Positions 1,518 through 39,000 of a DNA stretch of 53,959 nt are shown here, in pieces. Origin of the DNA: Octopus sinensis (taxonomy: Eukaryota); contig NW_021833953.1 of assembly GCF_006345805.1 (NCBI RefSeq), positions 1-53,959 on the forward strand, in the 5' to 3' direction. Every line of letters begins with the position of its first letter. Position 1 is the first letter of the stretch. A program made the position numbers and the translations under genes. Under the pieces are notes generated by a model. It worked only from the letters and a program-made list of their open reading frames with translations, was not told where the DNA came from and searched no databases.

Positions 1518-2525
1518 TCAAACGAAAGTGACAGTCTCAGCCTCCTGCCACTCAATCTTATTATTGATGAGATCATGAAGAGACATGCAAGAACGAAGGA
1601 GAGAATTGATATACACCACCAATAATTGGTCGTTAATTTTAACATTAAAAGGCTGCCATACAAATAAACAATACCTCTACAAACTCGTCCACTGGAGGCA
1701 TAAGAGTGAGGATCTCCTGAATGCCGAAAGCAATCTTGTTGGGGACGGGAGTGGCCGTGTCCAAATAATGTTCCAAAAAGTCCCCAATCCTGACAAGCTG
1801 ATCAACCAATGCTCGAAGTCCAATAATTTGCCCAGTGATTCTCGACGAAAGAGTGCCGTACACATTTTTCCCGACGTCCCTGGCAGTGAATAAATGTCTC
1901 TCACCGGAGAAGGTGTTCCACTCCCACTTCCTCGGCCTCCTCTGCCCCAATCTCGCTGGGAATACGCTCAAATGTATTTTCGGGGACTCCCCACTCGGCC
2001 ATTTCCCCCACCATTCGATAGGCCTGTGTGGGCAAGTCAAACGTGGAGGAAAGTGACTGAATGACCACAAGAACCTTAATATAAATAGAAAAGAGGACTG
2101 GATCAGTGCAGAACTGCTTAAATAGGAGGTGGATGTCCATGTCGTTGAGGTAGAGAGTGTTTCCGTTGTGATACCACCCCACAATCCTCTCCTTGGCTAA
2201 AATAACACACAGGACATACCAACCTGTCACTTTTTTGAACATATCGGACATTTTTTCGAGATAAGTCGAGTCAATGAACCATAAACTGGAGTCTTCAACA
2301 TCCTGGTCGTATGGCACTATGGGATGACTGGATAACAGTACAGCCGTAGCTGTTGGTTATCTCCAACTCGGTCCCCACTCGATACCCCAGCAATACACCC
2401 AGTACACGGTCCACTGTTGTATTCTTGGATATTCTCGTGTAGTGGTCAGCCACGTTGAGAAGGACGAGAGGATGGACTATTATTTTGCTGACTAATTTGG
2501 TTGTGTCAGTGTACACAGGATTCAT
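1518..2525 (-). CDS. PSMD7: 26S proteasome non-ATPase regulatory subunit 7 (Rpn8/MOV34), 5 micro-introns
   Basis: MPN-domain motifs VHPLVLLNVADHY, ERIVGWYH and PSEIGAEEAEEVGVEHLLRD are joined by GT-AG introns of 25, 27, 24, 25 and 22 nt. Confidence 0.96.
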
Positions 2526-2612: not shown

Positions 2613-5600
2613 ATGAGGGCCACTTTTTCCAACATGGCCAAATTCGCCAACACAATGAATCTGCCCAAGACAACCCTCCCCCTCTCACAACGAGGTCTCC
2701 CCGACACAGAAAAACGTCTCCACAAGGTATATCCGTCCACCCAACCACTAGACCTGTGACATGGACAATCTATACAATTGGCAGCACAAAAGAGAAGGAC
2801 TTGAGACCTTCATCCTCCACGACGGGCCACCATATGCCAACGGAGATGTCCACATTGGCCACGCCCTGAACAAAGTTGGTCCTCTTCTTCTCCTCCCAGA
2901 TCTTGAAGGATATCACCAACCGATATAAATTACTGAGAGGTTTCCGAATACATTTTATTCCCGGCTGGGACTGTCACGGTCTCCCCATCGAGTGGAGAAT
3001 CCGCGACTGTTGGAGTGACAAATCCCTATCTTCCGTGGATTTACGGAATAAAGCACGTTTATTTGCAGAGGAGGCCATTGAGACACAAAAAAAGGCTTTT
3101 CGTCGTTGGGGGGTAATGGCCGACTGGGACAGACCTTACAAGACGATGGATCCTCAATACCAGGCCAACCAGATCAGGGCTTTTGGACTGCTGTATGAGA
3201 AAGTAGTCCATTCCTATATTGTGGGGACTCATCTACCGGAAACTGATGCCTGTGTATTGGTCTCCCGTCACCAGGACTGCCCTCGCGGAGGCCGAGTTGG
3301 AGTACAACCATAAACACAGCAGGTTGGGTAGTCCACTTAAATTAGTCAATCGGTCTTTGTGAGGTTCAGACTGAGCAAACATCCCTTCGATGGCCAGGCT
3401 GTGTTCGCCCTTGTGTGGACTACTACAGCCTGGACACTCCCGGCCAATGAGGCAATATGCTATAATCGGGATTTTGAGTTGTGTTTGTGATTTATGGCAG
3501 ATATGGGCTATATTTGTCGGGTTCGGATTTGTATGTTATTTCCACTGCATTGGCCGCCCGTGTGGCCCAGCAAACACAAATGCCTCTTCGATTGATGCGA
3601 ATTATTTCGGGTTGTGTTTGGGAGGCATTGACAGGTCATGAATTGGAGAACTGTCGATATCTCCACCCTTTTAAAATGACAGAACGTGGTTTTATAAATT
3701 CTGAAAAAGTGACGAATGAGGAAGGGACTGCCCTCATGCACTGTGCCCCCTCCCATGGCCACGAGGATTATTTAATTGGACTGAAACACTCTCTCGAAAT
3801 GGTTGGCCTTCACTTTCACTTCAGGAAGATATTGTGGATGAAGGAGGAGTACTGAGGGATCACTCCGGGCTGGGGGGACTCAACATACTCGATGATACAG
3901 CAGAGAGTGAGTGTAATTGATGTAGGCTAGTAATCCAGACCATTGGTCGAGATGTGGTGGGTGTGTGTCCCCTCATTCACTCTTACCCCTACGACTGGCG
4001 CAGCAAAACGCCTGTCATTCTTAAACCCAGCCGACAGTGGTTTTTTGACTGCGAACGTATTAGAGAACGAGCTATTGTAGTGTTATCTGTACATTGCAGG
4101 AGTTGGTCAGCCAATTGGACGTGTTTCCGCCTGTCTTTCTACGACAGTTGGTCAGTCTGGTCAAAAGTCGTCCCACTTGGTGTATTTCCCGACAACGGTC
4201 GTGGGGAGTGCCCATTCCCGTGTTCTACGATGGGGAGACTCCAGTGGTGAATAGGTGGCCTTTTCTTATGACCGAAGAGTCCTTATTAGGCACATTGAAC
4301 AGGTCATTCGAGAGGAGGGGAGTGATGTCTGGTGGACTGCTCAGATTGGGGATATTATTCCCCCACGTGTGTGTTCAGAGGCAGGGATTGAGGTGGGCAA
4401 ATTGAGAAGGGGGACTGATATTATGGATATTTGGATGGACAGTGGGCTGTCTTGGCTGACGGTTATTCCCCACGTGCCGGCAGACATGTATTTGGAAGGA
4501 CACGACCAAATCAGAGGGTGGTTTCAGTCCTCCCTCCTTATGTGTGTCGGTCTCCACTCCCGTCTCCCCTTCAAGTACTGCTGAGTGGCCCACACAGGTC
4601 TCTGGCTGTCCACGGATTCACTACGGACGAGAAGGGACTCAAAATGTCCAAATCAGTGGGAAATGTGCTCAGTCCGTGGTATATCACTGAGGGGGACATG
4701 GGTGTGACCACTCTCCGCTGGTGGGTCGCCTCCACGTCCTTCCAAGCTGACGGGACATGCTCATCCTCCATTCTGAGAGATATGTTTGAAAGGACATTTC
4801 AGATGAGGAAGTTTATTCGATTCATGTTGGGATGTGTCCACGATTTGGATGGGCTTTCCAGTCCTCGGAGTGCATTGGATCATCACTTTCTCCATTCCAT
4901 TCAAACTGTTGACCATTCTGTCCTCCCATCACTCCTTATTCTTAGATTGTGGCTGCTTTTGACTCATGCAAGTTTAGTCTTGTCCTCAAACTTCTGGAGG
5001 ACTACAGACAGTATGTCTCCACCAGCTACTTCTCTCGTATTAAACATCGGTTGGACATTTTGAGTATTTCCAAGACTATATTGCTTCCATTCAAGTTCTC
5101 CATCCAGGAAGTCTGCTCAGTCAGTCATTCTTTGCTGTCTGGATTTGTTTATGTTTGCTTTGGCGCCGATTGTGCCTCATTTGATTGAGGAAGTCTACGA
5201 ACACCACCCTTTTAGATCTGGTAGTTCGTCTAATTATTCCAGAAATCTCGTTTTTTAAGAAAAAGTGGCCATCTTTGAATATATACTCGACTGCCAACCA
5301 GCAGGTCGTCCAGAAAGTGAATGTGCTGCACCAATTCAATAAATCATTCAAAGACAAGTCGATTGACCTCAGTCGGTTTATTCTCCATGTTCACGACCTT
5401 TCTTTCCTGGTGTGTTCTCGCAATATTTCAGGACATGACCACTCCTCTCGATGGACGTGAATATTCTGATCTCGTGGAGGTGTTTCAATGTTCTGACGTG
5501 ACTGTTTCCTCGTGTCCTCCAAAGGGCGATAATTACATAGAAATTGATGGTAATATTGCTGGTGTGCAGTCTAGGTCTGTGTATATCATTTGAGCCATCA

Positions 5601-8064: not shown

Positions 8065-10542
8065 ATGACGACGATGAGTGCCATGTCAGACCACACTTTC
8101 GAACACGATGTAAACGACGTGGTTGACGAGGTTGTGGGTACCCCGATTTGTAGTACTTGCACTATATGAGTTACGAGAACACCCGTCAGGCCCTCAAGAA
8201 GGAAAGGTCTTCTCAAAAAAGTAGTATCGGCATGAAGACAAAAAAGGAAGTGAAGGTTGGGGACTGTGATATGGACGCAGACGAGGTTACTGCAGTTCTT
8301 GGAAGACGGTGACCGTGATTCATTCGCGGAGGAATGGGCAGTGGCCTTTGCCGGTTTGAAAAACAAATCAGCAGTGGATACAAAAAACAAAATGCGATTT
8401 TATGTTGAGATTTTCTTTGCAACGTTCGAGCACAGGGAGCCTGCAAATGTTTTTGTGTTCGCTGACTTGCCAGTTCGACGAGGAAGCCAATGCTCAGCGC
8501 CTACAGTTATTTAAAGACTTTTTGGAGGCCGAAGGTGCCGAACTGGGTCAGTCAAGGGATTTCTTTCCATATTGTGCACTCGTCTGTATAAAGAATCCGA
8601 GGACTCACCGAGCATTCAAAAACATATTCACGGAAGACTGGGTGACTAGTTTGAGAGGAAAACTTGAAAAGTTTATGAATAAATTCTACAAAACAGAGCG
8701 GCCTCGTCTCTTCGATCTAAGGGTATCTGTCCGATAACGTTTATTGCCAGAAAAACACAATTTGCAAATGTAAAATTGAGGTGTTTACTTGATAAGCATG
8801 TGACAAGGTCGAACGGGAACGGGACTTGATCGAACGACGTCTGGAAAAAGCAGTCAAGCAACTGAACGAGGTGGAAATTGATTATCGGAACCTAATCGAC
8901 ACTGCCAGTCAATTAATCGATGTTCTTGAAGACACGGTCAATGGCAAAGTGGTTGAGGAGTCCTCACATGTGTGTAGCTCACTCCGGAGAATTTGGACGA
9001 CATTGCCAAGAAAATGTTCAGAAATGAGGGGACCAATCGAATCATGTCCAGTAGAGCGTTCTTCCAAGTAAATCGGGCAAGTGAGAGAATCCCAAACGAG
9101 CCAAAGTACATGCAGACTGTGAGTAGTTCAGGGAAAAGGGAGAATCGAGCAGACTTGACTTTGACAAGATCAGACAGACAATATCAGAAAGTGATGAGAT
9201 GAAGACATGTCTTGTGTTGCAGGCTCTCCGATGGGTATGAAAGTGGCATTTATTCGTCAGAAACTAACCAGGGCAACCAAACAACGACGAAAGGATATTC
9301 TGACCAGTTTCATCAACAATGACATTATTGGGTGCAGAAGACTGGTGGACTACCAGAAATACGTTGTCAGATGTTTCAAGTCGACATGTACAGAAACTCG
9401 CCAGTACATGGCCCGCTTTATTAACTCGTTGGCCTCGCTTGCCCGTGGTGGGTTGTCTGTGGTCAGTCTGTAGGGAGAGACTATTTGACTAATTCGCCTA
9501 CTTTGCTGGTCTCAATGATATCAACAATGCGTGAGGAAGAAGGGGACACGGTGACTCGACAGCATTTGATAGGGGCAATTCAAAAACTCACTCTGCGGTC
9601 AGTCCAACTGAATAAGACAGTTAGACGTCCATTCCAAAAAGAAATGATAAAAATGAACTTGATTGAGTGGATCATGGAACAACTAGAGGACTATCGAAGA
9701 CTGTCCGACTACTCTCTTGAGTATGGAGTGGCCCTCCTAATGAATTTGTGTCTTCTCCGAGCAGGGAGAGAACGGTGCGTGGGGAATGCAGGCAAATATT
9801 TAAAGTTGCTGTTGGAATTATTGTGCAATCCAAACCCCGAGGTAATCTCTTCATATAGTGTAGATTCAACCATATGTCCACGGGACGATATACACGCTCC
9901 TTTCAGACCCCAGAGTCAGGGTTGTGGGGAACTCGATGGTAGGCCTACTGCTGATTCCCAGAACATGGAAACCCATCTCACGGAAATTATCAGAAACAGC
10001 ACATCTGAGAATGCAAAACAGATCCAACACATAATCAGGCGTTTACAGGGTTCTGATTGTGCTCATTGCAGACGATTCTGACTACCAAGCAAAGTCAGAC
10101 GACGAGGAAGAGCCGGATAACAGCGAGGTACCCTGTGCCCACATCCCCAGGATGACCCTGATGTGATGGAACCAGACCTGAATGAAGGGGAAATACTGAA
10201 TGTCCAAAACATGCTCAGCGGAGACTCACTGCTAAACCAGGAATACTGCGTGTCCTCAAAGCCTGGAAATGATTTTTACATGAGTCGGCCGACCACTCCA
10301 ATGAAGCCTCCCCCACGAACAGTCCAGCCTTCTCGTACTAAAATGGAGTCTGACCAGCCTGAGGGTAAAACTGATGACTCATTTCAGTGGCTGACAACAA
10401 CGTACTGCCCGTGATGACTATCGATACAAAACTTGAGTTCAAGTTGTCTAATCATGAATATAGTCTTAGAAACTACGACGCTGTCTTTGTAGCTCGACCA
10501 CGAATTGCCAGAACTCCCGATGTGGACATAAAAAGACGATAG
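8065..10542 (+). CDS. ARMC9: LisH domain-containing protein ARMC9 (ciliary)
   Basis: LisH-like VVDE|YLHYMSYENT, KMRFYVEIFFA, FLEAEGAELGQSRDFFPYCAL, TRQYMARFINSLAS, TRQHLIGAIQKLTLR, SDYSLEYGVALLMNLCL and C-terminal RPRIARTP. Confidence 0.93.
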
Positions 10543-10644: not shown

Positions 10645-11380
10645 ATGTCCATTCGTGTGGTGGTTTGTAAAAGTTTTGAGGAAAATGACTCATACGGCGA
10701 GTGTTTGTCAGAGAAGTATAGCACTAAAATCTTCAATGTGATTAAATTTGTCCACATAAATGAGTCCGAAATGACATTGAGCCTCCGGGACGACACACTT
10801 GACGGTATCACCAGCCAATCATCCCTAAGGAATCATATTGACTAGTCCTCGAGCAGCGCATATATTTTTGACCCACCTCGACTCAACTCACATTTGGGTC
10901 GATAAGAAAATATTTTGCGTAGGCAAAAGAACAGCTTCAATTGTCCTCAAACTGAAAAATGTTGTAGTCGCCGAAGGACCTCAGGCTCTGCCACAATCCA
11001 TCGCCAACTCAGTCCCCCCTGAGGCACACCTGCTGTACCCTCACAGCAACATTGCCAACCCTCGCCTGCCTCGAGAACTGCGACAAGCCGGCATTAAATT
11101 GACTCAACTGGCTGTTTATGAGACTATCCCGGACGATGAGGGGGTCATTGCGTTAGAACGTCATTTGGCAGTCCAAACACCCCAATTTCTCGTGTTCTTC
11201 AGTGGGTCAGGCGTGAGAGCGTGTGCTCGCCTACTGACCGACAAAATGGACTCCCAAATTGTAGCCGTGGGGGAAAGTGCCGAGGAGGAACTCAACAAAT
11301 TGAATATCTCCATAACTGGCTATCTCAGCACTCCCTCACCACAGTCCCTACTGGCCTTAATTAATACTCACATTAACTAA
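10645..11380 (+). CDS. UROS: Uroporphyrinogen-III synthase, one 25-nt intron
   Basis: D|GIILTSPRAA, IFCVGKRTA, LAVYET, FLVFFSGSGV, IVAVGESA and STPSPQSL match the HEM4/UROS family. Confidence 0.9.
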
Positions 11381-11413: not shown

Positions 11414-11976
11414 CTACATTCCGGGAGGACCAGGAGGCATGCGTGGGGGCATCTGTCGGGGGACGGACTGTCCATTCAAGGGTAGGCGAGTGGCCAGAGA
11501 CTGTTGGAAGGGAGGAGGCATCATGGGGGGTCTCATGGCCGAGGGGTGCATCATGGAAGGGGCAGGCAGACCCACTCCTCTCGGGGCAGTTTGTAAAGCC
11601 GGGTTTGTCATAGGGACACCTCTCCCAGCCATTTTAGCAATTCCTGGGTTGACGGGGACGGTGGCCTGAGGGAGTCTTATGGCTGTCTCCTCGGGGGGTG
11701 GACGTCCTTCCACGGTCATCAACATCAAATGCTCCCCTCGGAGAAGGACAAAGCCAAGAGAACGCTTTTCTTCTCTTTCCTCTTTGGTTTCCCTGTTCTT
11801 GATAATTCGGAATTCGTCACAGTCCCCCAAGACCACGTTCATATGTCGATCAAACCCTTTCATTGTGCCGACTAGTTGGCGACCATCGGACAGTGTCAGT
11901 CGCATTCGAAAGTTCAAAAACTGAATTACTTTACCACTTCTTGGTGCCTATAATTAGAATACATAATAAGCACCAT
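11414..11976 (-). CDS. SNRPB: Small nuclear ribonucleoprotein SmB/B'
   Basis: ATG, a 26-nt intron, then [16 protein letters not shown]...[16 protein letters not shown]...[18 protein letters not shown] and a Pro/Met-rich tail. Confidence 0.96.
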
Positions 11977-18036: not shown

Positions 18037-19145
18037 ATGGAGACTGTTCAGAACTTGTTTCTGCTGGATACTATTTCTAGAAATGTCAACAAAAAACTAA
18101 TGTCAAACAAAAAGGAAACAATTTTGCTCTCGCTAATAAAATCTGGGGACTACGAGTGCTTCTTTGACTTGGGACAGCTATACCTGGAGAACGTATGCTT
18201 GTTCTGAAGGAAAATCAGGGCGACATTGAAGAAGCCTTCAGAATGTTAGAGAACGGCAGCAAACATGACATCCAGGCAAAATATCAGCTTGCAGTACTAC
18301 ACTTTGACGGAGTCTTGGGTCAGTCTGATCATGTAAATTGTAATCGACTATTAACAGAAGACGGGGATGAGACTGATGAAGCAAGTCGCATGTGCGGAAG
18401 AATCCTCAGACAAAAGTGCCGTTGTGAGGGCTGCACAGTACAACATTGGCCAGGCGTATCTCCACGGAGTCGGCGTGGAAGCAGACTACGTTGAAGCTAT
18501 CAAGTAAAGAGGAGTTTTCACAAGGGTTTTTTAAACTGGCTGCAGAAAGCGGTCTTGCAAAGGCTCAAACGGCCCTGGGATTTATTTATTCGGATTTAAA
18601 AAGCGATTTGATGGACTTGGAAAAGGCATTCGTGTATCATTCGGATGCCTGCCGCAACGGGAGCGTCGAGTCACAGGGTTGATGCTTTGTGCATGTACAG
18701 GAATTGTCGGATCTATGTACTTGTTTGGCTTTGGGACTACTCCCAACTTGGACAGTGCCATTAAATATCTGAGGGACGCAGCACGCCGAGAAAATATATT
18801 AGCTAAAGGACTGTTGGTGACTTGTTATCAAAAATGTGGCTTTTTCCGTCAGGCATTTGATCTGGCTCAGAGGTGAGAACAATTTTCAAATGTCTTAGAG
18901 TCGCAAATCTAGAAGATCAGGTCGACAGGATTGCACAGGACACCCAATGCTCTTCTTTTCTCGTGAAAAGAGGAGTCTGCTATGCTTCATTTCTGGTAGC
19001 TCGACACTACCACAAAGCGGGAGATGGGTTTCTAAGCAATGTTTATTATTCAAAAGTATGCATTTTGTTCTACCCACAGGCTATTAGGATGGATCCTGAT
19101 TTGAGTTTGACTCTCTATATGGCCGATCTATACGGACATCTTTGA
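18037..19145 (+). CDS. LRP2BP: LRP2-binding protein (Sel1-like repeats)
   Basis: FDLGQLYLEN|GDIEEA, AKYQLAVLHFDG, AQYNIGQAYLHGVGV, DLEKAFVYHSDACRNGSVESQG and YYSK|AIRMDP are collinear with vertebrate LRP2BP. Confidence 0.9.
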
Positions 19146-19551
19146 TTATAAAATTAATTCAGAATTAATTTAATTGTCTTTTTCCTCCTTTCGAACACTG
19201 CATTGAGGCGTTATTTGTGCTGGTAGATGAAAGTATGTAAAAGAAGTTTGTTTTTTTTATAATTGAGAGCTATTTGTTCAGTTTGATCTATTTCTGTCTT
19301 TATGTTGGATTTTTTTAATTACGCCCCTGTTGGATGATTGGGCAACGACGATAAAATCCTAGGTCCTAGGTCTTAAGCAGTCTCCAATGACATGTTCAAT
19401 GTGAAGAGAAAGTCGAGGATGAGTTTATTTTTAAAAGATTTGTTATTTTTATAAATCATCAATTTCCATGTGATGTCAATAGTCTGAAATAATTCATTTT
19501 ATTAAAGAATGAACAGTTTTTCATTTCCAAATGAAATGTTTACATTGCTTT

Positions 19552-20050
19552 AACTGAGTGAACCAAGGCACAAGGGTATTCTTTCGATAACTGAAATATT
19601 TAAAATGAATAGATTGAATAATGCTTGGCAAAGTGGGACATTGTGGTATATATTCAGACAAAATTAATTTAGATTTAATATATTCCTTAATAAAATACAT
19701 TCATTGATACAAAATCTACTGATGATCTGAGAAATAAGAGACGAAATGTGTTGAATTGCTTAAGATCTAACATTTCTTGTAAAGAATATTTAAAGTTTAG
19801 TAAAATTTATAACTATACGACTTGTTAAACTTAAAAGATGCCAAATTATTCACACATTATACATGGAACAAGATTGATAGTTCCTTAATATTCAAATGCA
19901 TTGCTTGAACTGAGAGAACCAAGACACAAAGGTATTCTTTCGATAACTAAAATATCTAAAATGAAAAGTTTGAATAAAGCTTGTCAATGTGGGACACTTT
20001 GGTATATATTCAGACAAAATTAATTCAGATTTAATATATTCCTTAATAAA
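19552..20050. repeat. Diverged direct repeat of about 143 bp (19552-19694 and 19908-20050)
   Basis: Both copies share GAACCAAG-CACAA-GGTATTCTTTCGATAACT...GGTATATATTCAGACAAAATTAATT-AGATTTAATATATTCCTTAATAAA, offset by 356 bp. Confidence 0.85.
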
Positions 20051-20401
20051 CTAAATCCCCGAAATTGGCGGATTTGAGGGACTTTACTGTAGTCAGTTTT
20101 TTATAGACGTATCTTTTTGTTTTCTAGATATGCTAAATGTGTCATTTTCTTTATAAATTTAGTGACTTGAGGAATAAATGTGACATTTTAAGACATTTTA
20201 ATTACCAAAGGACCAAGGTATGCCAGTTAATTATAATCTCCTGTGATCTCCAAAGCTTCAGCCAAAGGGCCAGTTAGATAAACATCTACAACTATAAAAA
20301 AGTTATTAAAGTTAGAGGAGTCCGTTTTACTATATTGTATTTGGATATATCATTGTAATTATTTTAAATATGATTTGATTTTTTTGTCTTTGTGGGTTTT
20401 T

Positions 20402-23400
20402 ATGGATTGCACTTTATTTGTCGAGCATCTTGACTTACTGGTCGACAAATGTGGAGGATTGTTGGTCAGAATATACAACTATAAAAAGGTACATTCACAC
20501 TGACAGTGTTAGATGTTGTCCGACTCCTCGTCCCATTCATGGCTGGGAGACAAAAATGTCGAGTCTGCCTTAAAGTCAATTTCCAAGAAGCACAATTCTC
20601 TCAACCTAAAATCTGTAAAAATTTTCCTACCAATCAGAACTATGCTTTATCCGTGGGGCCCCTTCGTGGTGACATTATTAAAGATATGGGTCCCCTCTAC
20701 TCTACACTTCTCGACCTCCTCAATCTCCTCGTCTCGCCTGTTTGGTTACTTTTAGGACAACCTCCGACCATTCGCCAATTTACTAAATGGACTAAATCTC
20801 CGTTTGGACATTGTACTCCCTCCTGATTGACCTAGTCCAGGGGTTCTCAACCTTTTTAGCTCAAGGGCCAAATCGATAATTAAGATTAGCTTCGCGGGCC
20901 GCACAAAAAATATTTTATATATTTTTATATTTTCCATTTTACTAAATATTGATTCGCATAAATATGTAGATTCATATATGCATTGTGTGTTATATTTTTG
21001 AATTTGTTTTGAGGAATTAATTCGTAAAAATTAATAATGGACGCATTTTTGAACAATGCCGCCAGTTCTATATCATGTTGTAAATTAATGAGTTCTAGTT
21101 GAAACTTTGCAGGCGCATCCTTAATTTCCACGCTGAATGGAGTTGCGAATATTTTCATCAAAGGAAGGAATTCTTTAAAATTCTAAAAATTAAATTTATA
21201 TAAATGTACCCCAAAACGTGCTTCAAATTGATTAATGAAATCACCAATTATGAATATGTTTAACCTTAAGAATGAATAATTAAATTTAAACATTATTAAA
21301 AAAATTACAAAAGTTAGTTACTCTAGAGGGGCCGCAAACAAAATCCTGGGGGCCACATGCGGCCCCGGGGGCCGCATTTGAGAACCGCTGACCTAGTCGA
21401 CCAATCCTTACCCAGGATGCTCACTCGTCCAGTTGGTGGCTGATCTGGTCTCGTCTCTCCTTCTGATTGGGGACATGCCCAACCTCCAGTCACTGATCAC
21501 CCTCTATTTCTACTGCCACTCCTCTGTCCATGGAGTACGACTAGAGTTGCCTCAGACTTGCCAATTATAGGGAATTCACTCGATTGGGTCACTTTCTTGT
21601 AGAGTGTGGGGCACCCTTCAGCAAACTAAGGAAAGAGGTGGGGACATTTGCAGGGGTTGGTGGCTGTCTAATCCTCAGGTCGTGGGGACATGTCTCCACT
21701 CACTCTTCACTCTCAATACTCAGTTGCCAGACATCCCTCCCTTTCGACTGGCCAGATTGACACTCCGTCTATTATTTGTCTCTACTTTAGTTACTTCGTT
21801 GGCTGTGACTGGGGAAGTGGTCAAGGACAGTCTGTCTTCTTATTTCCTCGAAACTATACGTACATTCCCGCTGGTTTGTCTTATCCGGGACGAGGTCAGA
21901 AATGTCCATGACCTCTTTTCTCGCTGTTTTGCGGCTATAAAACTGTTGGAGGTTGATTGGTCATTTTATAGTCAACTTGCTTCTAAAATGGAATTGAGGC
22001 AGAATTCTATCAGTCATTTGTTAAATGTGTACTAATATGGCTAGTCTGGCCGACAGGAAAGAGAAACGACTGTTTCTGTTGGGATTGATGGAAGAATTGT
22101 GTTCAGAAATGGGGAGAGGGTTTATTCCAGAAAGAGTAGTCGTCTTATCTTACTAAAGTTGTGTCTCATTTCCAAATTGATGGAGCATTCTGTCGACGAG
22201 ATAAAAGCAGTCTTGTCAGCCACTGTCCTCGTGCACTCCAAACGTGTCAAATTGGAAGGCGACCTCAATGACAGGCACACAAATACAGTAACCTGCAGGT
22301 CAGTTGGGGGACTAGTATATATATTGGGACGCCTACATAATATGTGTTTGATTGGCAAGTCTGTTGCGTTAGACTACATCAAATCACGGTGCCATCACAT
22401 TCTCTCTCGATTGGAGGTTGTGTCGTGTGTTTATTCCAGGAGTCCGACGATGTGATGATATTATTGAGACAAGCCATTTCTAGCCCAGTCGACCATCTGC
22501 GAGTTGTGCAGACCATTTACAGTCAACGAGGACTGTCTGTATCCCCTGATCTTTCAGAATTGTTATTTATACTCCCCCTTCTGCACGGATACGAGCATTG
22601 GTTGTCAAACAAGTGTGATCTTTCCTCATATTTGTACTCCACCTGGTTATTCCCAGTTTTCCTCCCCGTTTGCTTGAACAACACATGCATGTTTGCATTA
22701 GTGATCCTGACAGAACCCCCTTCTTATTGGGGTATATGCGAGTATTGGAAAGTGTTGGGGGGTGTCTCCATCGACTGTGTCCCGAGGAGGTATCCTTGCT
22801 AGTAATGACAGCACTCCTCCCTTTTGGCACTGTCAGAGAACATGTCTCTCAAATTGGTGGAGGCAGTGAGTTGTGCTGTGGTGAGACACATTGAGCAGTC
22901 CTTCCTGGTCAGACTAAGGATGATCGAACAAGTATGTCCCACTGTTATGCCAGATTGACTGTCCACTTGTCATGGCTGCCCGACTGGTGACTAAACGTGG
23001 AGTGGAGTACTCCGAGTGGAGTCCAACTCCTCTGTCCTCTCTCCTACGGGTTGTTGGGGCACAGCACAGACCAGTACTGCTCAGTGCAGTCAAGGCACTA
23101 TTCCTTAAGTAAGTGAAACAATTATTCCAGACTGGTGGGAGAGTGTGCTGGTTTGATGCCCTCCCGTGCCCTCAGACGAGTCAGAATTATACGAGAACTG
23201 TCGATGGAGACAGTGAGTGAGGAGAGTGTGGTGGAAGGAATGCACCGAGTGTATTGTGAGGTCATCCTCCAAGCTATTGCTCGTCGTGAAGTGCTCTACT
23301 CATTTGCCCACGACTGTTTTGTGGGGATATGCCCTCTGGATGGGGATACTCTATTTGATTTGGAGGAGTATACGTCACCCACTGGTTGTCTGTCCATAGC

Positions 23401-24232
23401 AGTAGTCATAGAACTTGTGGCTTTGTCATCTCTCATTGGTGAACAAGGGATTGTCCTGATTGCCCAGAAAGTGTATGCTCATGTGGTGGATCAGTTCAGA
23501 GAGTTGATGGTAGTATGTGTTTTGTGACTCCAAGAATATCTCATCCCAACTGCACTCACAAATCAAGACCGTCCATGCCAATTTGGGGGATGTCGGTCTC
23601 CTTAGTGAGTCAGTCAAGACATTTCAGAGTAATGAATATGGTCAGTCTAAGGGAGTGCCCGTCGTGAATTGGATGTCTTTTTCAACCGGCTGGTGGTTGG
23701 AAGTGTCCTTCTCCAGTACCGTTCCATGCTTCTTAACAACTCATGTGCTGGTTTTAATGAGTTGGGGGAGTGCTTGGATGACAGTCCGGGTGTCTATTGT
23801 GTTCATATTGACAGAAAATGCCTTCCATTCGCTGGCTATTCTCATTGCGGTCTGCCTCACTCGTCCGTCGGTTTATAATAACCTGAAATACTACGAGGAA
23901 TACGATGGTGGCATTTTTATGTCTAAAGAAGGGTTTTCCAATAACGTGGCCTCAATTTCCGCGTTCATCACAGCCTTCTTTCCTCTTCTGGCCACGGAGG
24001 AGTCGGGAGTGTTCACACGAGTGGAGGACATGGTGAAACTAATTCTTCTGGTTCCACTCTCAGAGTTACTGTAGACCTGTTCTGCTGTGATGTGCAGTGA
24101 ACATTCTCCCGAGATGATGCATGTGAGTGTGTACAGGGTATGTCCTCCTTCTTAGTGTAGGTGCTGCATGCTACTCAATATCTCTCTCACGACGTACTCG
24201 AGCAGTGGCTATCTAAGCCTGTTTTTGTTTGA
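20402..24232 (+). CDS. NCKAP1: Nck-associated protein 1 (Nap1/HEM-2, WAVE complex subunit), with a transposon at one splice acceptor
   Basis: GLLVRIYNYKK|...SWLGDKNVESALKSISKK, EFTRLGHFLVE, CLIRDEV, LHRLCPEE, FDLEEY, EGFSNNVASI and YLSHDVLEQ are collinear with NCKAP1. Confidence 0.92.
20838..21390 (-). mobile_element. 553-bp internally deleted hAT (Buster/SPIN, GTF2IRD2-like) element
   Basis: TIRs CAGGGGTTCTCAA and CAGCGGTTCTCAA; perfect 8-bp TSD ACCTAGTC at 20830-20837 and 21391-21398. The internal ORF FATPFSVEIKDAPAKFQLELINLQHD...FYELIP matches the hAT transposase C-terminus. Confidence 0.95.
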
Positions 24233-24308
24233 TTTTGTTGATTTATTTTCTCTTTATTTATTGTTTAGTTACGTAGATTATTTTTGGAATAAAATATTTA
24301 AAATAGTG

Positions 24309-25117
24309 ATGGACCCTGATTTGGTTGCAGTTGTATTGTTGTACTCTTAGTATATCTACGGTGGTAGTCTTGGGGCCTGTAAGAAGACAATTCGGTCAGC
24401 AGTGATGTTTATCGCCATGCAGTCCGGTTATGAGGTGATAGAGGAAGCTGCTCTTTCTGCTCTTGTCGAACTGCTGATTGTCTGTAATTCTATTTCTATC
24501 ACTAAGGATATGTGTGAGCTCACCAAGGATGCACATGACCTTTGCGAACACTCCAGTCGAACTCTCCTAGTGCCTCGAGACGTCCAACTGGCCTACACAG
24601 AACTGGGAGGGAACATCGAAGACCTCATCTCTTATGGGGAATGGGCCACAGCTGCTAACGGCATTCCTCCAAATGTGATTTCGGTCACTCCGGAGAGACC
24701 TCTATTGACTGATATTGGGGACAAGCAGCCTCTGCCTTCCCACCTCCCAGACCATGTTAGACCATTTCCCGATCCCCACACTTATTTGAGGACTCCGAGT
24801 GTGGCTGGGGAGTTCACCGACGAGCGAAATCAGCGAATCAAATCCACGGAGGACATTCGCTCTATTTTTGGTGCTGTGGCCAGACTACGAGCTCATGAAT
24901 CCACGTTTGTCGAACTGGGCAACACTGATTTCCGCAGTTGTGGATTGACTATTACTTTTAGTTTTGTATCCGAGAGGAGTGCAGTGCTACCTCCATGGCT
25001 GCCACGATGCAGAGTATCAAGATTCTGCTCAACCTCCCCCTTCTGAAGCTTCCAAAAAACTATATGAGGATGTTTCTTTCTCTTAGACACACACTCAGAT
25101 TTGTATTGTCGGATTAG
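24309..25117 (+). CDS. TAF8: Transcription initiation factor TFIID subunit 8
   Basis: Histone-fold SGYEVIEEAALSAL...LCEHSSRT...DVQLAYTELG and TAF8_C motif HLPDHVRPFPDPHTYLRTP. Three introns of 27, 27 and 25 nt. Confidence 0.93.
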
Positions 25118-27359: not shown

Positions 27360-27700
27360 CAAAACTAAACGTTTGTCAACATCCATTCAGAGGACCTCCC
27401 ACTGGACAGCACTTCCTTTAAGCTCGGGCACTTTGTTGAGGAAAATCCTGGACCTGGAAAGAAAATCAATATATTGAGCCTGAATATCAACGGAATTATG
27501 CCGGAACATCGGGAAAGGTTGCGAGAACTGCTGCGAATACCATTGATAATTGAAGCGTGGGATGAAACTAAAAGAACAACAGCAACGAATTGCTTCGAAA
27601 AAGCATTTAACAATTGGGCAAAGCAGGACACTCCGGATGCCTCTACTATTAAGGAGGACTCTACGGTTTCAGATGATAACGAAAAATCAAGTGAATAAAA
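27360..27700 (+). mobile_element. APE-type non-LTR retrotransposon remnant: 2A-like motif and start of the endonuclease
   Basis: VEENPGP at 27435-27455 is immediately followed by KINILSLNINGI and a loose IIxxxxETK motif. Confidence 0.6.
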
Positions 27701-28339
27701 ATGATGAAGATATAGAAAAAATTGGTTTCTGTGATGCAATGTGTGCAATTGAGACTGGAAAAGTTTATTCTACAAAATTCACCTTCAAATATACCAATTA
27801 TGGGTAAATTACGAAATATAATGCAAAAAAAACTTGTAATAACTGATTTTATGTGTAAAAATAAATAAATTCGAATTTTCTAAATTATTTTGAATTTTCG
27901 TTAGAAAAAAAATCCACTGTATTATCGATGTAGCATGTTTGTTACTCTCAATGAATATACAGTAGAATCATTTTTATCAAATAATTGCATCAAAGTAATA
28001 CTAAATGTTTAAAATTAATTTTTTACGAATATAGAAAAACGGAGTCCGGACCTATTAAACGTGCTCATTGTAGATGGCAGGAATGATTTTTGTCGTTATA
28101 GTTAACAGTTATTCCGGGTGTTCCATGTTTATTGATATCAGAGTAAACTGATACATTCTCCAATCAAATATTAGACCAAAGGTACTAAGTTCACGTTAGC
28201 GTTGTAAATCAGTGCTAATTCGCTAGCTAAAGACCGTATTTAAAAATTTGTTTGATTTGAACTTGTTTAGAAATTGTTATCTTAAATAAAGCATAAAATT
28301 TATTTGCGTCTAAAAGAATTATCCTCATGTATCAGCAAC

Positions 28340-28920
28340 CAGAAGATCTGTAAGATCCAAATTCGTTTCCATTAGACAATTAAAAAATGTTGAATGCAGT
28401 GACTTTCTTTTAATCTTTTCATTTATATGTTTTTTTTGACTTCTTTAATTCTAAATGTAAAAAGAACTTTAAAGACGAATAATTTGCTCTGCTACTCATT
28501 CAACAGTTAAACTCAGCGGAATGTGAAAACTCTCAAGATCTTATTCACTTTTCAAAAATTGACCCAGGAACCGTTTAAAATATATAAATCCATAGATTTC
28601 TCTAATTGGTCCATAAATCATAACCGATAAAAAATATTATTTAAAGCTATCTTCTATTAATATTTATAAATTTTCTGTCGCCAGAGCTAACAGATTTAGA
28701 ACTGGCAGATCCAGTGCTGATGTTATCTGGATGGCTGCATTATGTCAAAAATACAAACAAAGCGCCGAGATACTCGGAATTGACATGTCCAGAGCATTCA
28801 ATTCAGTTCACAGAATTAAACTCGTTAGAATACTCACAATATTTTTAAATCAGGACTAAATCAGTATCATCGTAAAGCTTCTTCAAGCCACTCAGAATTC
28901 ACCGAGGAAAAATCATTGTG
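28340..28920 (+). mobile_element. RTE-like reverse transcriptase pseudogene fragment
   Basis: FRTGRSSADVIW...CQKYKQSAEILGIDMSRAFNSVHRIKLVRIL (RT domains 2-3), with stops and deletions. Confidence 0.8.
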
Positions 28921-29720: not shown

Positions 29721-30351
29721 TTATTATTCCTCGAAAAAATGACCACAAGACAATTATAAGTTTTATAAATATTGACAATTATTGGAATCGCCAAATAAGT
29801 AAAAATGAAATTTTAATTAAAAAGAATTCTTCTTTTCAAGAAACTTTACTAAAAATTTCTACTTGTAAGTAAAGAAGAGTGGTCGAGAATCTGCTGGCAA
29901 CTTTCTTGTTCACAAGTTCGATTCCCAGCGGCTCCTGTGCCGGAAGCTCCGTTTAAGTTCTACGAGTCATGGATATCTGATCACATATGGATTCCAAATA
30001 TGAATGGATTTTCGAGTGAGATGTCAAAAGCTTTCTGACGTCCCAACAGCCGCACTACAATTAAAAGAAAACTTTAAGACAAGTTTTATTCTGCTTATAC
30101 TCATTTTGCACAAACAACTTTAACTCGTTGCCTAAAAACTTGAAAGTCTTTTTGTCTTCATTAATTATCATTCGATAGGTCACCTCTTGTTGAGTTCAAA
30201 ACAAAAATTCTTGTTTAATGGAAAAATAATATATAATTTGATAACAAAGATACCTAAAAGTCTTATCTATGTGGAATCTTATGTGTAAGTCTTTGCATTC
30301 CTCGGAATTGACACAAGTACTTCGATTTTGGTCAGCAATTTATAATAGTTT

Positions 30352-30433
30352 AAAATGGACTCTGACTAGCCTGAGGGTAGAACTGATAATTCATTTCAAT
30401 GGCTGACAACAACGTACTGCCCGTGATGACTAT
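30352..30433 (+). pseudogene. 82-bp duplicated fragment of ARMC9, including an intron
   Basis: 76/82 identity to 10340-10421 by manual alignment. Confidence 0.93.
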
Positions 30434-31699: not shown

Positions 31700-33040
31700 C
31701 TAATTTAAATTTCCTCAGAATTCAAAGATGAGTTCTATATTGCTGAAGATGGCCTTTTATTTTGTTCTCTTTGTGTATCAAAAGTCAACTATTCAAAAAA
31801 TTCTCAGTCGATTCTCATCTTTCTTTTTTAAAACATCAGAACAATATGCGTATAAATTTGTTATACTATTATAGGTCATTCATGTAATTCAGTTCAAACA
31901 ACATTAACTGAATCAAAGTAGATTCGGTTAATGAAACGATCACACAAGCTTTTGTACAATCAAACATCCCGCTATACAAATTAAATAACGATTCGATCAA
32001 AAAATGTTTGAAACATAAAATTAACACTCCCTCCGAATTTTCATGCAGAACTATGGTAAATTTTTGCCGAAAAAAAGATAAATGAGTTGAAAAAATTATT
32101 AACGTATTAAAATTTATTTTTTAACTTTTAAAAAGAAAAGATTTTTATAATAATTGATGAAACAGATATCCGAATGAAAAGTTTTGCAGTGATTCTAATT
32201 GGGATCATTCGCTTTCCAACAAAATCCTATTTGGTTGAATGCAAACCACTGGAAAATCATGCCAATGCTTGTATCATCTGCCAAATAATAGATGATGTCA
32301 GTAGAGAAATGAAGACAATTTTTATCTATTAATTTCAGATGCCGCTCATTATATGATTTCTGGTGATATAAAAGTATGTAAATAAATAGGTGGTAAAACT
32401 TAGTGGTCATGTATAACAACATGCATCATGTGACTTGTGTTTCTCATTTGTTATACAATACGGTTTTACGTATAAAGTGTGCATATCCGAAAGTAGATGG
32501 TTTAATTTCAAGCATTAAAGCAAAAAACCTAAGACTTCGTAATTTGTTCAAGGATGTAGGATACCCATCTGATGTGGTAATTTTTTTTAATTTTGCAGAT
32601 GGGGAAGTTGGTTTAAAGGAGCGAAATATTATTTCATTAATTTCGAAATAATTTGTGAAATTGTTTTCAGTCAGATTGAGTTTTAGTATCAAATGCTAAC
32701 ATCATGTAAATAATCCAGATATTAAACTTAAATTAACGGAGATGATATCCAATTATTCACAAATAATCTTCTTATAGATCTTCTTAAAAGTTCGGAATGC
32801 TGCGATTACTCAATCAATCTTCATTAATATTATGATATAAAAGGACTACATTTTTATGATGACAAGAAAAGATTAAAAATGATATGAACAAAAGAATGGA
32901 GGAAAATGGATTTAAATCCATTATTGAAATCACTGAACCGAAAATTAGCCAACAAGATTATTTTTTACTTTCACGCAGTCAGGCATCCTCTGCATCTGTT
33001 GAAAGAGAAATTAAAATGCTGAAAAATATTTAACTTCAAT
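31700..33040 (+). mobile_element. Degenerate hAT-like (CGGBP1-related) transposase pseudogene
   Basis: LFCSLC...SHL zinc finger, AFVQSNIPLYKLNN, IIIDET, LSDAAHYM, HVTCVSHLLYN...PKVDGLISSIKA and SASVER, with many frameshifts. Confidence 0.75.
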
Positions 33041-33177
33041 GATTGTTATCTGGAAAATCTTCAAAAGGCGGGGACAAAATGAAGAAAAAAAGAAAATGGT
33101 GATATGATGAAGAAAATATAAACGTGGGATATAAATTTATTATTAGACGTGAAAAACTAGATAATTATGATCTAGAA

Positions 33178-33760
33178 CAGCGGTTCTTGACCTTTTTCAA
33201 ATTTTTGATAAATTGTACCCCTTGGGGTTAAAAATGAATCCCGCGTACCCCCTATCGATTTTTAAATTTTTACATATCTTTTTTTGAGATAAATGACTTA
33301 ATTATAAAATATAAATTATTTTCTAACTAAACAAAATCAATAAAATATTTTATGCTTAAAAAGTGTAAAAGATTTAATTCTAGTGAGATATTTGTTGTTG
33401 CTTTTCTGCAACAAGTTTTCTAATATTCGAATCCATGTTGCTAAGAGCGATTAGCATATCATCTCCAACTTTCAATCGATTTCGCATAAGTATATGTTGT
33501 TGGATAAGGAATTAAATATTGCATACTAGCCATAGTCAATAACAAATACTTTGGAATCATTTTACTCCAAAATTCCATAAGTGTCCAGGAATTGAAACAT
33601 ATCTGAATAATCACAAAAATTGTAAAAGTAACCCTTGCAGTCGCAGAGCTTTTTAAATCAATTAATTCTTGTAGAAAAGGAAGTTCCTGAGCCTCATCAA
33701 TCTTACCAAAAAATGGTTCTAAAATCCAATCGGGAACAATCTGATCGCTATTATCGATTA
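33178..33760 (-). mobile_element. 3' end of a Buster/Charlie-type hAT element (ZBED8/SCAND3-like)
   Basis: TIR CAGCGGTTCTTGA flanked by ATCTAGAA. Minus strand reads PDWILEPF...LQELIDLK...EFW...PYPTTY...RNRLKVGDDMLIALSN...QQISH*. Confidence 0.85.
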
Positions 33761-34439
33761 AATTAAATTATGTTCCTTAAATATCGCTTTTTTCGTTAGA
33801 ACTCCTACCGCCAAATCCAAATTCAATGATTTCCGCCTCAATTGATTTAAGTGACCTGTCTATCGACATATTGGGTTTCTTTTTTAGAAGGACTGCTTTT
33901 TAAAACGCCTACCTTTCATTGGTTTTTTTAGATTTTGAGACTTTTTGTGCTTCCAGTTCTATAGTCTCGGTCTGCGTATAGTTTTCATTATATTTTGAGT
34001 CTATTCGTCTGGTTTCAATAGATACCCTGCTTTTTAAGACTTTTGCTTGCAAACGATTCTTTCAAACTAAAGTCACAGTTTGCTGTTTTTTCTATTTTAG
34101 TAATCTAATTAAGTTTTTTTGAGTTATTTTAGCGTGAAAGTTTATTTTGATTATCTTAGTTTGTTTTGATTTACAAGTTGAAAAAATATTAAGTATTATT
34201 GATCAAATATATATTTCAAAAATGGTCATCTACGATGTTAAATGCCGTTATCTACAGAACCGGATTTACCTAGAAGGGACTCACACGCAAGAATCAAATG
34301 ATATACCAAATATATCTGAAGTTAGTAAAGATACGTGTCCACTTAAAGAAATGAATGATGATTTATTCAAAAATATACACACAAGTCATTAAAAAAAAAA
34401 GAATTTTGAATAGTGTTATATTGTTCAAGAAAATTCAAA

Positions 34440-36060: not shown

Positions 36061-39000
36061 AATTACGCAAATATTACGTAATTTATTGCATAATCTCAAG
36101 TACCCCCATATGCTCACATTTAGGGACATCCCAAAATGCATAATATATTACGCAATTTATTACATAATCTCAAGTAGCCACATATAGTCACATCTAAAGA
36201 GCTCCCAAAATTGCATAAAATATTACGCAATTTATTTCATAATCTCAAGTACCCCCATATGCTCACATTTAAAGACCTCCCAAAATTGCATAATAAATTA
36301 CGCAATTTATTACATAATCTCAAATACCCGCATATGCTCTCGTCCAGGGAGCTCCCAAAATTGTATAAAATATTACGTAATTTATTGCATAATCTCAAGT
36401 ACCCCCATATGCTCAGATTTAGGGACATCCCAAAATGCATAATATATTACGCAATTTATTACATAATCTCAAGTAGCCACATATAGTCACATCTAAAGAG
36501 CTCCCAAAATTGCATAAAATATTACGCAATTTATTTCATAATCTCAAGTACCCCCATATGCTCACATTTAAAGACCTCCCAAAATTGCATAATAAATTAC
36601 GCAATTTATTACATAATCTCAAGTACCCCCATATCCTCACATCTAAGGAGCTCCCAAAATTGCACAAAATATTACGCAATTTATTGTATACTTTCAAGTA
36701 CCCCTATATGCACACATCTAGGGAGCTCCCAAAATTGTATAAAATATTACGTAATTTATTGCATAATCTCAAGTACCCCCATATGCTCACATTAAGGGAC
36801 ATCCCAAAATGCATAATATATTACGCAATTTATTGTATACTTTCAAGTACCCCTATATGCACACATCTAGGGAGCTCCCAAAATTGTATAAAATATTACG
36901 TAATTTATTGCATAATCTCAAGTACCCCCATATGCTCACATTAAGGGACATCCCAAAATGCATAATATATTACGCAATTTATTACATAATCTCAAGTAGC
37001 CACATATAGTCACATCTAAAGAGCTCCCAAAATTGCATAAAATATTACGCAATTTATTTCATAATCTCAAGTACCCCCATATGCTCACATTTAAAGACCT
37101 CCCAAAATTGCATAATAAATTACGCAATTTATTACATAATCTCAAATACCCGCATATGCTCTCGTCCAGGGAGCTCCCAAAATTGTATAAAATATTACGT
37201 AATTTATTGCATAATCTCAAGTACCCCCATATGCTCACATTTAGGGACCTCCCAAAATTGCATAATATATTACGCAATTTATTGCATAACTTCAAGTACC
37301 CCTATATGCACACATCTAGGGAACTCCTAAAATTGCATAATATATTACACAATTTATTGCATAATCTAAAATACCCCCATTTCCTCACATCTCGGGAGCT
37401 CCCAAAAATGTATAAAATATTACGTAATTTATTGCATAATCTCAAGTACCCCCATATGCTTACATTTAGGGACCTCCCAAAATTGCATAATATATTACGC
37501 AATTTATTACATAATCTCAAGTACCCGCATATGCTCACATCCAGGGAGCTCCTAAAATTGTATAAAATATTACGTAATTTATTACATAATCTCAAGTACC
37601 CCCATATTCTCACATTCAAAAAACTCCCAAAATTGCATAATATATTACGCAATTTATTGCATAATTTCAAGTACCCCTATATGCACACATCTAGGGAGCT
37701 CTTAAAATTGCATAATATATTACGCAATTTATTACATAATCTCAAGTACCCGCATATGCTCACATCCAGGGAGCTCCTAAAATTGTATAAAATATTACGT
37801 AATTTATTACATAATCTCAAGTACCCCCATATTCTCACATTCAAAAAACTCCCAAAATTGCATAATATATTACGCAATTTATTGCATAATTTCAAGTACC
37901 CCTATATGCACACATCTAGGGAGCTCTTAAAATTGCATAATATATTACGCAATTTATTGCATAATCTCAAGTACCCGCATATCCTCACATCTGTGGAGCT
38001 CCCAAAATTGTATAAAATATTACGTAATTTATTGCATAATCTCAAGTACCCCCATATGCTCACATTTAGGGACATCCCAAAATGCATAATATATTACGCA
38101 ATTTATTACATAATCTCAAGTACCCCCATATTCTCACATTCAAGGAACTCCCAAAATTGCATAAAATATTACGCAATTTATTGTATACTTTAAAGTACCC
38201 CTATATGCACACATCTAGGGAGCTCCCAAAATTGCATAATATATTACGCAATTTATTGCATAACATCAAGTACCCCAATATGCACACATCTAGGGAACTC
38301 TTAAAATTGCATAAAATATTACGCAATTTATTGTATACTTTAAAGTACCCCTATATGCACACATCTAGGGAGCTCCCAAAATTGCATAATATATTACGCA
38401 ATTTATTGCATAACATCAAGTACCCCAATATGCACACATCTAGGGAACTCCTAAAATTGCATAATATATTACGCAATTTATTGCATAATCTCAAGTACCC
38501 GCATTTCCTCACATCTCGGGAGCTCTCAAAATTGTATAAAATATTACGTAATTTATTGCATAATCTCAAGTACCTGCATATGTACACATCTAGGGAGCTC
38601 CTAAAATTGCATAATATTTTACGTAATTTATTGCATAATCTCAAGTACCCGCATATGTACACATCTAGGGAACTCCCAATATTGCATAATATATTACGCA
38701 ATTTTTTGTATAATCTCAAGTACCCTTATATCATCACATCTAGGGAGCTCCCAAAATTGTATAAAATATTACGTAATTTATTGCATAATCTCAAGTACCC
38801 CCATATGCTCACATTTAGGGACCTCCAAAATTGCATAATATATTACGCAATTTATTACATAATCTCAAGTACCCCCATATCCTCACATCTAAGGAGCTCC
38901 CAAAATTGCATAAAATATTACGCAATTTATTCCATAATCTCAAGTACCCCCCCATATCCTCACATCTAGGGAGCTCCCAAAATTGCATAATATATTACGC

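Follow-up and report, generated by a model that had tools for sequence, protein, structure and literature searches.

Introners, described in Micromonas, Aureococcus and other organisms, are DNA transposons with terminal inverted repeats (TIRs) and target-site duplications (TSDs) that, once inserted in a gene, are spliced out as introns, the 3′ AG being provided by the TSD (PMC11282704). Here, we describe a non-autonomous hAT element that lies on the splice acceptor of a 23-nt, phase-0 intron of the gene NCKAP1, within a stretch of DNA filed as Octopus sinensis (unplaced contig VCDQ01010308.1, assembly GCA_006345805.1), which was analysed at its full length of 53,959 bp and is referred to below as the window. 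Like the introners, this element has TIRs and a TSD-supplied 3′ AG. Introners, however, make new introns within exons and bring one of the splice sites themselves, whereas the NCKAP1 element has no splice site of its own and would depend on the old donor, the TSD acceptor and a pre-existing intron position. The result would be an enlarged old intron facing a competing, intact old acceptor, and one copy of the element was present in the window.

Insertion alleles of the maize elements Ds and dSpm, on which Wessler and colleagues reportedly worked in the late 1980s, are said to be spliced from the pre-mRNA and to be leaky. They resemble the present case in that the spliceosome can remove a hAT-type element from a transcribed region. 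In the maize alleles, splicing relies on cryptic sites within the element or close to it, and the protein is usually changed, whereas the acceptor duplication at NCKAP1 offers exact restoration. Ordinary intronic transposons in long-intron genomes likewise lengthen an intron and leave the mRNA unchanged, but the host intron here was 23 nt long, so that any insertion splits or duplicates a core splicing signal. A competition between two identical acceptors is also a feature of duplicated 3′ splice-site systems. In the classic duplicated-acceptor constructs, the acceptor closer to the donor usually prevails, except where the exon context favours its competitor, and we know of no test of this competition in any ultra-short-intron organism. 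In such systems, a stem can loop out RNA, as in the yeast zipper and downstream stems (PMC12350175). Finally, hAT elements of the Buster clade such as TcBuster share with the NCKAP1 element the 8-bp TSD, a target of the form nnnTAnnn and termini that fit YARNG; the NCKAP1 element differs in being without an intact transposase, and its interior shares a weak C-terminal remnant with one relative. That transposons can be spliced as introns was known; what distinguishes this single case is that the insertion struck the acceptor of a micro-intron already in place, with the duplicated-acceptor competition that this would set up and the long intron that it would add to a genome of very short ones.

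The element occupied positions 20838–21390 of the window (553 bp, 32% GC, AT-rich) and was assigned to the minus strand as an internal-deletion derivative on the basis of its TIRs, its TSD, relatives sharing its terminus and a transposase remnant. A TSD search returned ACCTAGTC at 20830–20837 and 21391–21398 (no strand assigned), with the two copies matching at 8/8 positions; the right copy holds the distal acceptor AG (21395–21396). The duplication spanned the final 6 nt of the intron and the initial 2 nt of the exon, the pre-insertion target being ACCTAG/TC across the boundary (slash), just as the initial annotation of this DNA had proposed. The TIR search gave repeats of 13 bp, CAGGGGTTCTCAA on the left (20838–20850, plus strand) and CAGCGGTTCTCAA on the right (21378–21390, read on the minus strand), which matched at 12/13 positions. 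With up to two mismatches allowed, the 13-mer occurred in the window only at the element's own two ends. The terminal motif by which hAT TIRs are defined is YARNG. Both ends, CAGGG and CAGCG, fit this motif, the mismatch falling on the variable N position; because TIR position 4 also varies among relatives of the element (G or T), this single mismatch is uninformative on the age of the element. The earlier hAT call thus agreed with the 8-bp TSD, the short TIRs and the YARNG motif at each end, and hAT membership is well supported by these terminal features.

As a consequence of the duplication, two acceptor modules, each reading TGACCTAG followed by TC, stood 561 nt apart and were identical from −10 to +2. 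The identity reaches back to −10 because the terminal TG of the element happens to equal the old −8/−7 nucleotides. Similarly, the distal branch-like motif CTGAC (21388–21392) was composed of the terminal CTG of the element and the AC of the TSD. The sequence expected at the empty, pre-insertion site is ...CTGATTGACCTAGTCGACCAATCC... (also written ...CCTGATTGACCTAGTCGACCAATCC...); a search of metagenome contigs for the empty site or a spliced cDNA yielded no match. The perfect TSD copies, and a proximal AG that has not been mutated away, imply a probably young insertion. Chance could hardly produce a correctly oriented TIR pair between two perfect copies of an 8-bp sequence. Since the contig belongs to the unplaced sequences of a long-read host assembly, the insertion might conceivably be an assembly artefact or chimera, absent from real chromosomes, but the perfect duplication, the orientation of the TIR pair and the family-typical, TA-centred target form the signature of a transposition and not of a mis-join, and we regard an artefact as highly improbable.

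The interrupted gene extended over 20402–24216 on the plus strand, from an ATG at 20402 to a TAA at 24214–24216, and encoded 938 amino acids with 17 short introns in addition to the 584-nt interval containing the element. The gene model was obtained with a splice-aware dynamic programme anchored on tblastn matches to human NCKAP1. The human sequence had the role of a guide only; the model was validated independently against Pfam (PF09735, 168 bits, E 3.6e-49, cut-off 27) and against the PDB chain 3p8c_B (human NCKAP1, E 6.8e-24), with collinear stretches at residues 14–205, 290–380, 518–590 and 762–919. An earlier rough product had matched the same two references at E 2e-25 (Pfam Nckap1) and E 1.6e-15 (3p8c_B), and a protein search with the first rough model of 958 amino acids retrieved no homologue. 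These alignments identify the gene as NCKAP1, with an open frame that is collinear with the human protein; some of its modelled internal introns are uncertain. Gene models built on minimum introns or on codon usage only were wrong and chose a 36-nt intron at 21535, where homology gives one of 25 nt at 21546–21570.

The other NCKAP1 introns (n = 17) measured 22–31 nt and were all of the GT-AG type, with a median of 23.5 nt when the ancestral 23-nt intron is included. Their donors were scarcely conserved beyond GTA, a T/A pair was frequent at −9/−8, and 7/18 acceptors ended in TAG, five of them in CTAG or TTAG. Against this set, the 584-nt interval stands out clearly, and the reading frame downstream of it is intact. 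It had been singled out before as the only long intron among about 65. This held inside NCKAP1, the gene in which introns were sampled; across the window, a histogram of GT..AG pairs that join frames was too noisy for the figure of ~65 to be confirmed.

Such introns escaped the existing annotation of the contig. An exhaustive search with one exon of the NCKAP1 locus returned a single database protein, XP_029656592.1, which was 100% identical over the exon. This RefSeq entry ('TFIID subunit 8-like [Octopus sinensis]', 23204–25046) mis-joins an NCKAP1 exon (to 23509) to TAF8 through a spurious intron of ~840 nt. A second misannotation, a call of 238 amino acids at 18367–20826, fuses Sel1-repeat exons with 5′ sequence of NCKAP1. 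Micro-introns defeat standard annotation.

At the insertion site, exon 4 (20756–20812, plus strand, DNLRPFANLLNGLNLRLDI) ended in ...CTC CGT TTG GAC ATT at 20812, with residue 113 and in phase 0. It was followed by the ancestral 23-nt intron GTACTCCCTCCTGATTGACCTAG (20813–20835, plus strand), which was fully intact, with its donor GT at 20813–20814, its AG at 20834–20835, and branch-like motifs CTGAT at 20823–20827 and TTGAC at 20827–20831. Both length and motifs agreed with the 17 other introns. The 23-nt interval is not coding, because read-through gives LDIVLPPD and then a stop. Splicing to the proximal AG would continue with TCC AGG GGT TCT CAA CCT TTT TAG, the first in-frame stop being the TAG at 20857–20859 (plus strand), for a product of 113 + 7 amino acids. 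Past the distal AG, the sequence reads TCG ACC AAT CCT TAC (STNPY), the start of exon 5 (21397–21545, plus strand, STNPYPGCSLVQLVADLVSSLLLIGDMPNLQSLITLYFYCHSSVHGVRLE), after which the 25-nt intron follows. Joining 20812/21397 gave LRLDI/STNPYPGC, which aligned without gaps to VFFDI/TVNFDLTK of human NCKAP1. The span 20813–21396 thus comprises 584 nt with GT-AG boundaries and restores the reading frame. The initial annotation had anticipated these features, namely the donor GT at 20813, the proximal AG leading to a stop after seven codons and the distal AG restoring the frame, and each was recovered in the sequence.

No other route to an intact protein was found. The TAG at 21394–21396 is in frame with exon 5, and since a phase-0 intron ending in TAG leaves this stop in frame, acceptors upstream of 21396 are unproductive. 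A two-intron rescue after use of the proximal AG was rejected, as only one GT, at 20843, precedes the stop, and its use would leave 7 nt and a shifted frame. A GT..AG pair of typical micro-intron size at the left end of the element (23 nt, 20843–20865, GTTCTCAACCTTTTTAGCTCAAG) was likewise discarded, as it leads into a TAA. From this enumeration it follows that 20813 to 21396 alone yields an intact protein. In the sense orientation, the element contained no AATAAA and three ATTAAA. The earlier proposal that the insertion turned a 23-nt intron into a 584-nt intron was therefore right in that the latter is the only productive option, while "turned into" was overstated.

The properties of these introns also bear on the origin of the DNA. 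Reports of ultra-short introns in animals are confined to dicyemids and myxobolid myxozoans (PMC13644364). The contig is most likely dicyemid DNA, probably contaminating the host assembly, as judged from the 22–31-nt introns, the very divergent proteins and the gene content (ciliary ARMC9 and a mitochondrial-type isoleucyl-tRNA synthetase, IleRS); the gene set also included HEM4, an LSM/SmB protein, TAF8 and a JAB/MPN protein. Dicyemids, which are ciliated, parasitise cephalopods (PMC2222250, PMC12953835) and occur primarily in the renal organs. The IleRS of the window had its best identity, 58%, to the mitochondrial type, which makes Henneguya salminicola an unlikely source, and a myxozoan source is unlikely in general given the ciliary protein ARMC9.

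We consider it about even (probability roughly 0.5) that the allele is tolerated because the distal acceptor is used, probably alongside non-productive splicing to the proximal one. In this reading, a young non-autonomous hAT with a Buster-like, TA-centred target transposed into ACCTAG/TC, across the 3′ boundary of NCKAP1 intron 4. The 8-bp site was duplicated by gap repair, which left the old module with the whole 23-nt intron upstream of the element and placed the copy against exon 5. The old donor at 20813 would be joined to the distal AG at 21396 often enough for the allele to be tolerated, with the proximal acceptor competing, and the proximal products, with their stop after seven codons, would be lost to mRNA surveillance. 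The distal site may be helped by the authentic exon that adjoins it. Furthermore, the 13-bp stem of the TIRs may loop the element out of the pre-mRNA and bring the acceptors side by side. In a fold of 611 nt of RNA, the TIR stem paired with a probability of ~1 (−18.2 kcal/mol) and was predicted to extend through the palindromic CUAG of both TSD copies (−28.3 kcal/mol), the donor being predicted unpaired. Intron stems that shorten the effective distance between splice sites have been documented in yeast (PMC12350175), and by analogy a similar effect could operate at NCKAP1 intron 4. The intact rest of the gene, with its open frame of 938 codons and 17 GT-AG introns, also counts for tolerance. 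So does the fact that dicyemids splice longer introns: a mean of 38 bp was reported for one data set (PMC6736024) versus a median of about 27 bp in another, in which 1/3 of the predicted introns had at least 30 bp (PMC6543705).

Several points weigh against distal acceptor use. From its donor to +2 of the exon, the proximal intron is unchanged; it has a length typical for the gene and is ideally spaced, and its acceptor is transcribed ~560 nt ahead of the distal one. Under intron definition, the donor-nearer of two duplicated 3′ splice sites is usually preferred. Both AGs were predicted to be paired, with P(unpaired) ≤0.04, and the fold therefore juxtaposes the two acceptors without favouring either. 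The initial annotation had itself cautioned that the spliceosome would have to skip a well-spaced proximal AG; with the proximal module complete, this is the main weakness of the reading. In addition, the proximal AG carries no compensating mutation and the TSDs are perfect, so that the insertion is probably young, as a null allele requires, and the contig may derive from just one haplotype in a population of parasites.

It is accordingly a possibility to be taken seriously, if a less probable one, that the allele is young and null or strongly hypomorphic: the proximal AG would still be used, the frame would stop after seven codons, and the transcript would give a 120-amino-acid product or decay. 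In that case, the insertion would be recent, heterozygous or polymorphic among the parasites, and assembled by chance. That the proximal donor, branch site and AG were left unaltered fits this account, and an intact downstream frame is what would be expected of a young insertion. It also fits that the contig, 54 kb long and unplaced in the Octopus sinensis assembly, is most likely low-coverage parasite DNA. On the other hand, a null allele needs the disrupted haplotype of a conserved WAVE-complex gene to be the one that was assembled.

A further alternative is that NCKAP1 is dispensable in a reduced parasite, with the insertion as its first lesion and the position on the acceptor meaningless. 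Many genes have been lost in dicyemid genomes (PMC6736024), and in NCKAP1 a placement of this kind has a chance of ~12%, as detailed below. Nevertheless, the 938-codon frame is open, GT-AG boundaries are kept in 17/17 other introns, the protein is collinear with human NCKAP1 from residue 14 to residue 919, and there was no second lesion in the gene. We therefore regard dispensability as quite improbable.

The position of the insertion was evaluated with relatives of the element. Exact matches to its 20-nt terminus, CAGGGGTTCTCAACCTTTTT, were present in at least 120 contigs of a few JGI metagenomes. The terminus-bearing contigs stem from a handful of samples. The 120 loci with an identical 20-nt terminus (L001–L120), from organisms other than that of the window, served as the source of a target profile. 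Partner TIRs and an 8-bp TSD with 0–1 mismatch were present in 34 of these copies, which form miniature inverted-repeat transposable elements of 143–320 bp. The 8 nt outside the termini gave the consensus nYYTARRn, with T in 110/120 at TSD position 4 and A in 105/120 at position 5. This agrees with the published TcBuster target consensus nnnTAnnn (PMC3499496), which the TSD of the window, ACCTAGTC, also fits with TA at positions 4–5, and it bears out the 8-bp, TA-centred target of Buster type that had been assumed at the outset. The nYYTARRn target appears Buster-like and resembles a splice acceptor. It is this target preference that supports the label Buster-like, as there is no intact transposase.

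Beyond the terminus, neither the element nor the window showed similarity to the 120 metagenome loci. Within the element, a degenerate remnant that probably represents a transposase C-terminus was recognised antisense to NCKAP1 (20839–21182, minus strand). It lies in two frames, 20967–21182 and, after one frameshift, 20839–20982, and its conceptual translation reads ...PFSVEIKDAPAKFQLELINLQ...YESTYLCESIFSKMENIK.... The remnant matched one found in the same position, by the same TIR, in the relative L030 (phmmer E 5e-5). The L030 remnant in turn resembled the hAT dimerisation domain PF05699 with E 0.0075 and 16.5 bits, under the cut-off of 21.4 bits. A Pfam search with the remnant of the window element returned no match, nor did a protein search with the transposase remnant. 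Two of the JGI contigs, L030 and L113, additionally carried open reading frames (ORFs) resembling reverse transcriptases. A transfer of the element to the parasite from its cephalopod host is a possibility.

Every position of the pre-insertion NCKAP1 gene was then scored with the 120-site target profile. The actual insertion site ranked 41/3246. Positions at which an insertion duplicates an acceptor AG made up 3.9% of the gene and held 11.9% of the target weight, a 3.1-fold enrichment. The suggestion in the initial annotation that the family is drawn to acceptor-like sequence thus has a real basis, ~3-fold per position in NCKAP1. A random hit in NCKAP1 still duplicates an acceptor in about 1 in 8 cases. 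With a chance of ~12%, the placement is no strong coincidence if the allele is null. That account would nonetheless have the one TIR copy of the window be self-rescuing by a chance of ~1 in 8 among genic hits, while surviving transposon copies are expected mostly outside genes. The TIR is single-copy within 36 kb of unique sequence and is located in the sole self-rescuing kind of genic site, and such a placement would be likelier if self-rescuing insertions survive selection.

The remaining open segments of the window were assigned to a JAB/MPN protein (1904–2356, minus strand), the mitochondrial-type IleRS (about 2750–5100, plus strand), ARMC9 (9425–10078, plus strand), uroporphyrinogen-III synthase (10829–11377, plus strand), an LSM/SmB protein (11417–11947, minus strand), a Sel1-repeat protein (18168–18873, plus strand) and TAF8 (24351–25043, plus strand). 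An exact look-up of ten window ORFs, a weak test given their non-ATG starts, found none of them, and an Rfam search of positions 1–36500 gave no match. Just upstream of the NCKAP1 start, two direct repeats of 158 nt within an AT-rich region (19543–19700 and 19899–20056) were 90% identical at a spacing of 356 nt. A duplicate of 83 nt with 93% identity was found 20 kb apart, at 10339–10421 and 30351–30433, with one copy in an open coding segment (...ESDQPEGKTDDSFQWLTTTYCP) and the other beside a transposon-rich region.

Further putative mobile-element sequences were observed in the second half of the unique sequence. In an ORF at 27369–27695 (plus strand), the 2A-like motif GHFVEENPGPG immediately preceded INILSLNINGI, a start resembling that of an endonuclease, and downstream of it a fragment resembling a reverse transcriptase (...DMSRAFNSV...) was located at 28617–28856 (plus strand). 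The region 27369–28856 may be a non-LTR (long terminal repeat) retrotransposon, its Pfam search being negative. At ~31900–33800, fragments resembling a hAT transposase were found on both strands, among them ...LLISDAAHYM... (plus) and ...LPFLQELIDLKSS...EFWSKMIPKY... (minus). Pfam gave no match for these fragments at 31.9–33.8 kb, and BLASTP between the element remnant at 20.8 kb and the 33-kb fragment detected no similarity. From 36069 to 53959, the window consisted of a tandem array of 18 kb with a 75-bp unit in ~240 copies (82–89% matches) and higher-order periods of 150 and 225. The array, in which the GC skew is strong (about −0.37), continues past the contig end.

In animals whose introns are mostly shorter than 30 nt, such as dicyemids and myxobolid myxozoans (PMC13644364), the NCKAP1 locus touches on how these introns are recognised and how longer ones arise. 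It constitutes a natural experiment in which one donor faces acceptor modules, identical from −10 to +2, at distances of 23 nt and 584 nt. The junctions used would distinguish length measuring to the nearest site from redirection by exon context or by the TIR hairpin. More broadly, Buster-like hATs might disproportionately hit dicyemid micro-intron acceptors, with their YTAG/R-like target, so that the TSD recreates branch site and AG, the TIR stem loops the element out and the insertions rescue themselves, making them a main source of the long-intron tail in genomes where most introns have 22–30 nt; we hold this generalisation to be unlikely. Should the distal site be unused, the locus would be a fresh knock-out allele. 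If the self-rescuing reading is true, however, the spliceosome of an ultra-short-intron organism can bypass a perfectly spaced proximal AG, and with the distal site in use, a TSD-borne AG at the acceptor would be a concrete route for micro-intron growth.

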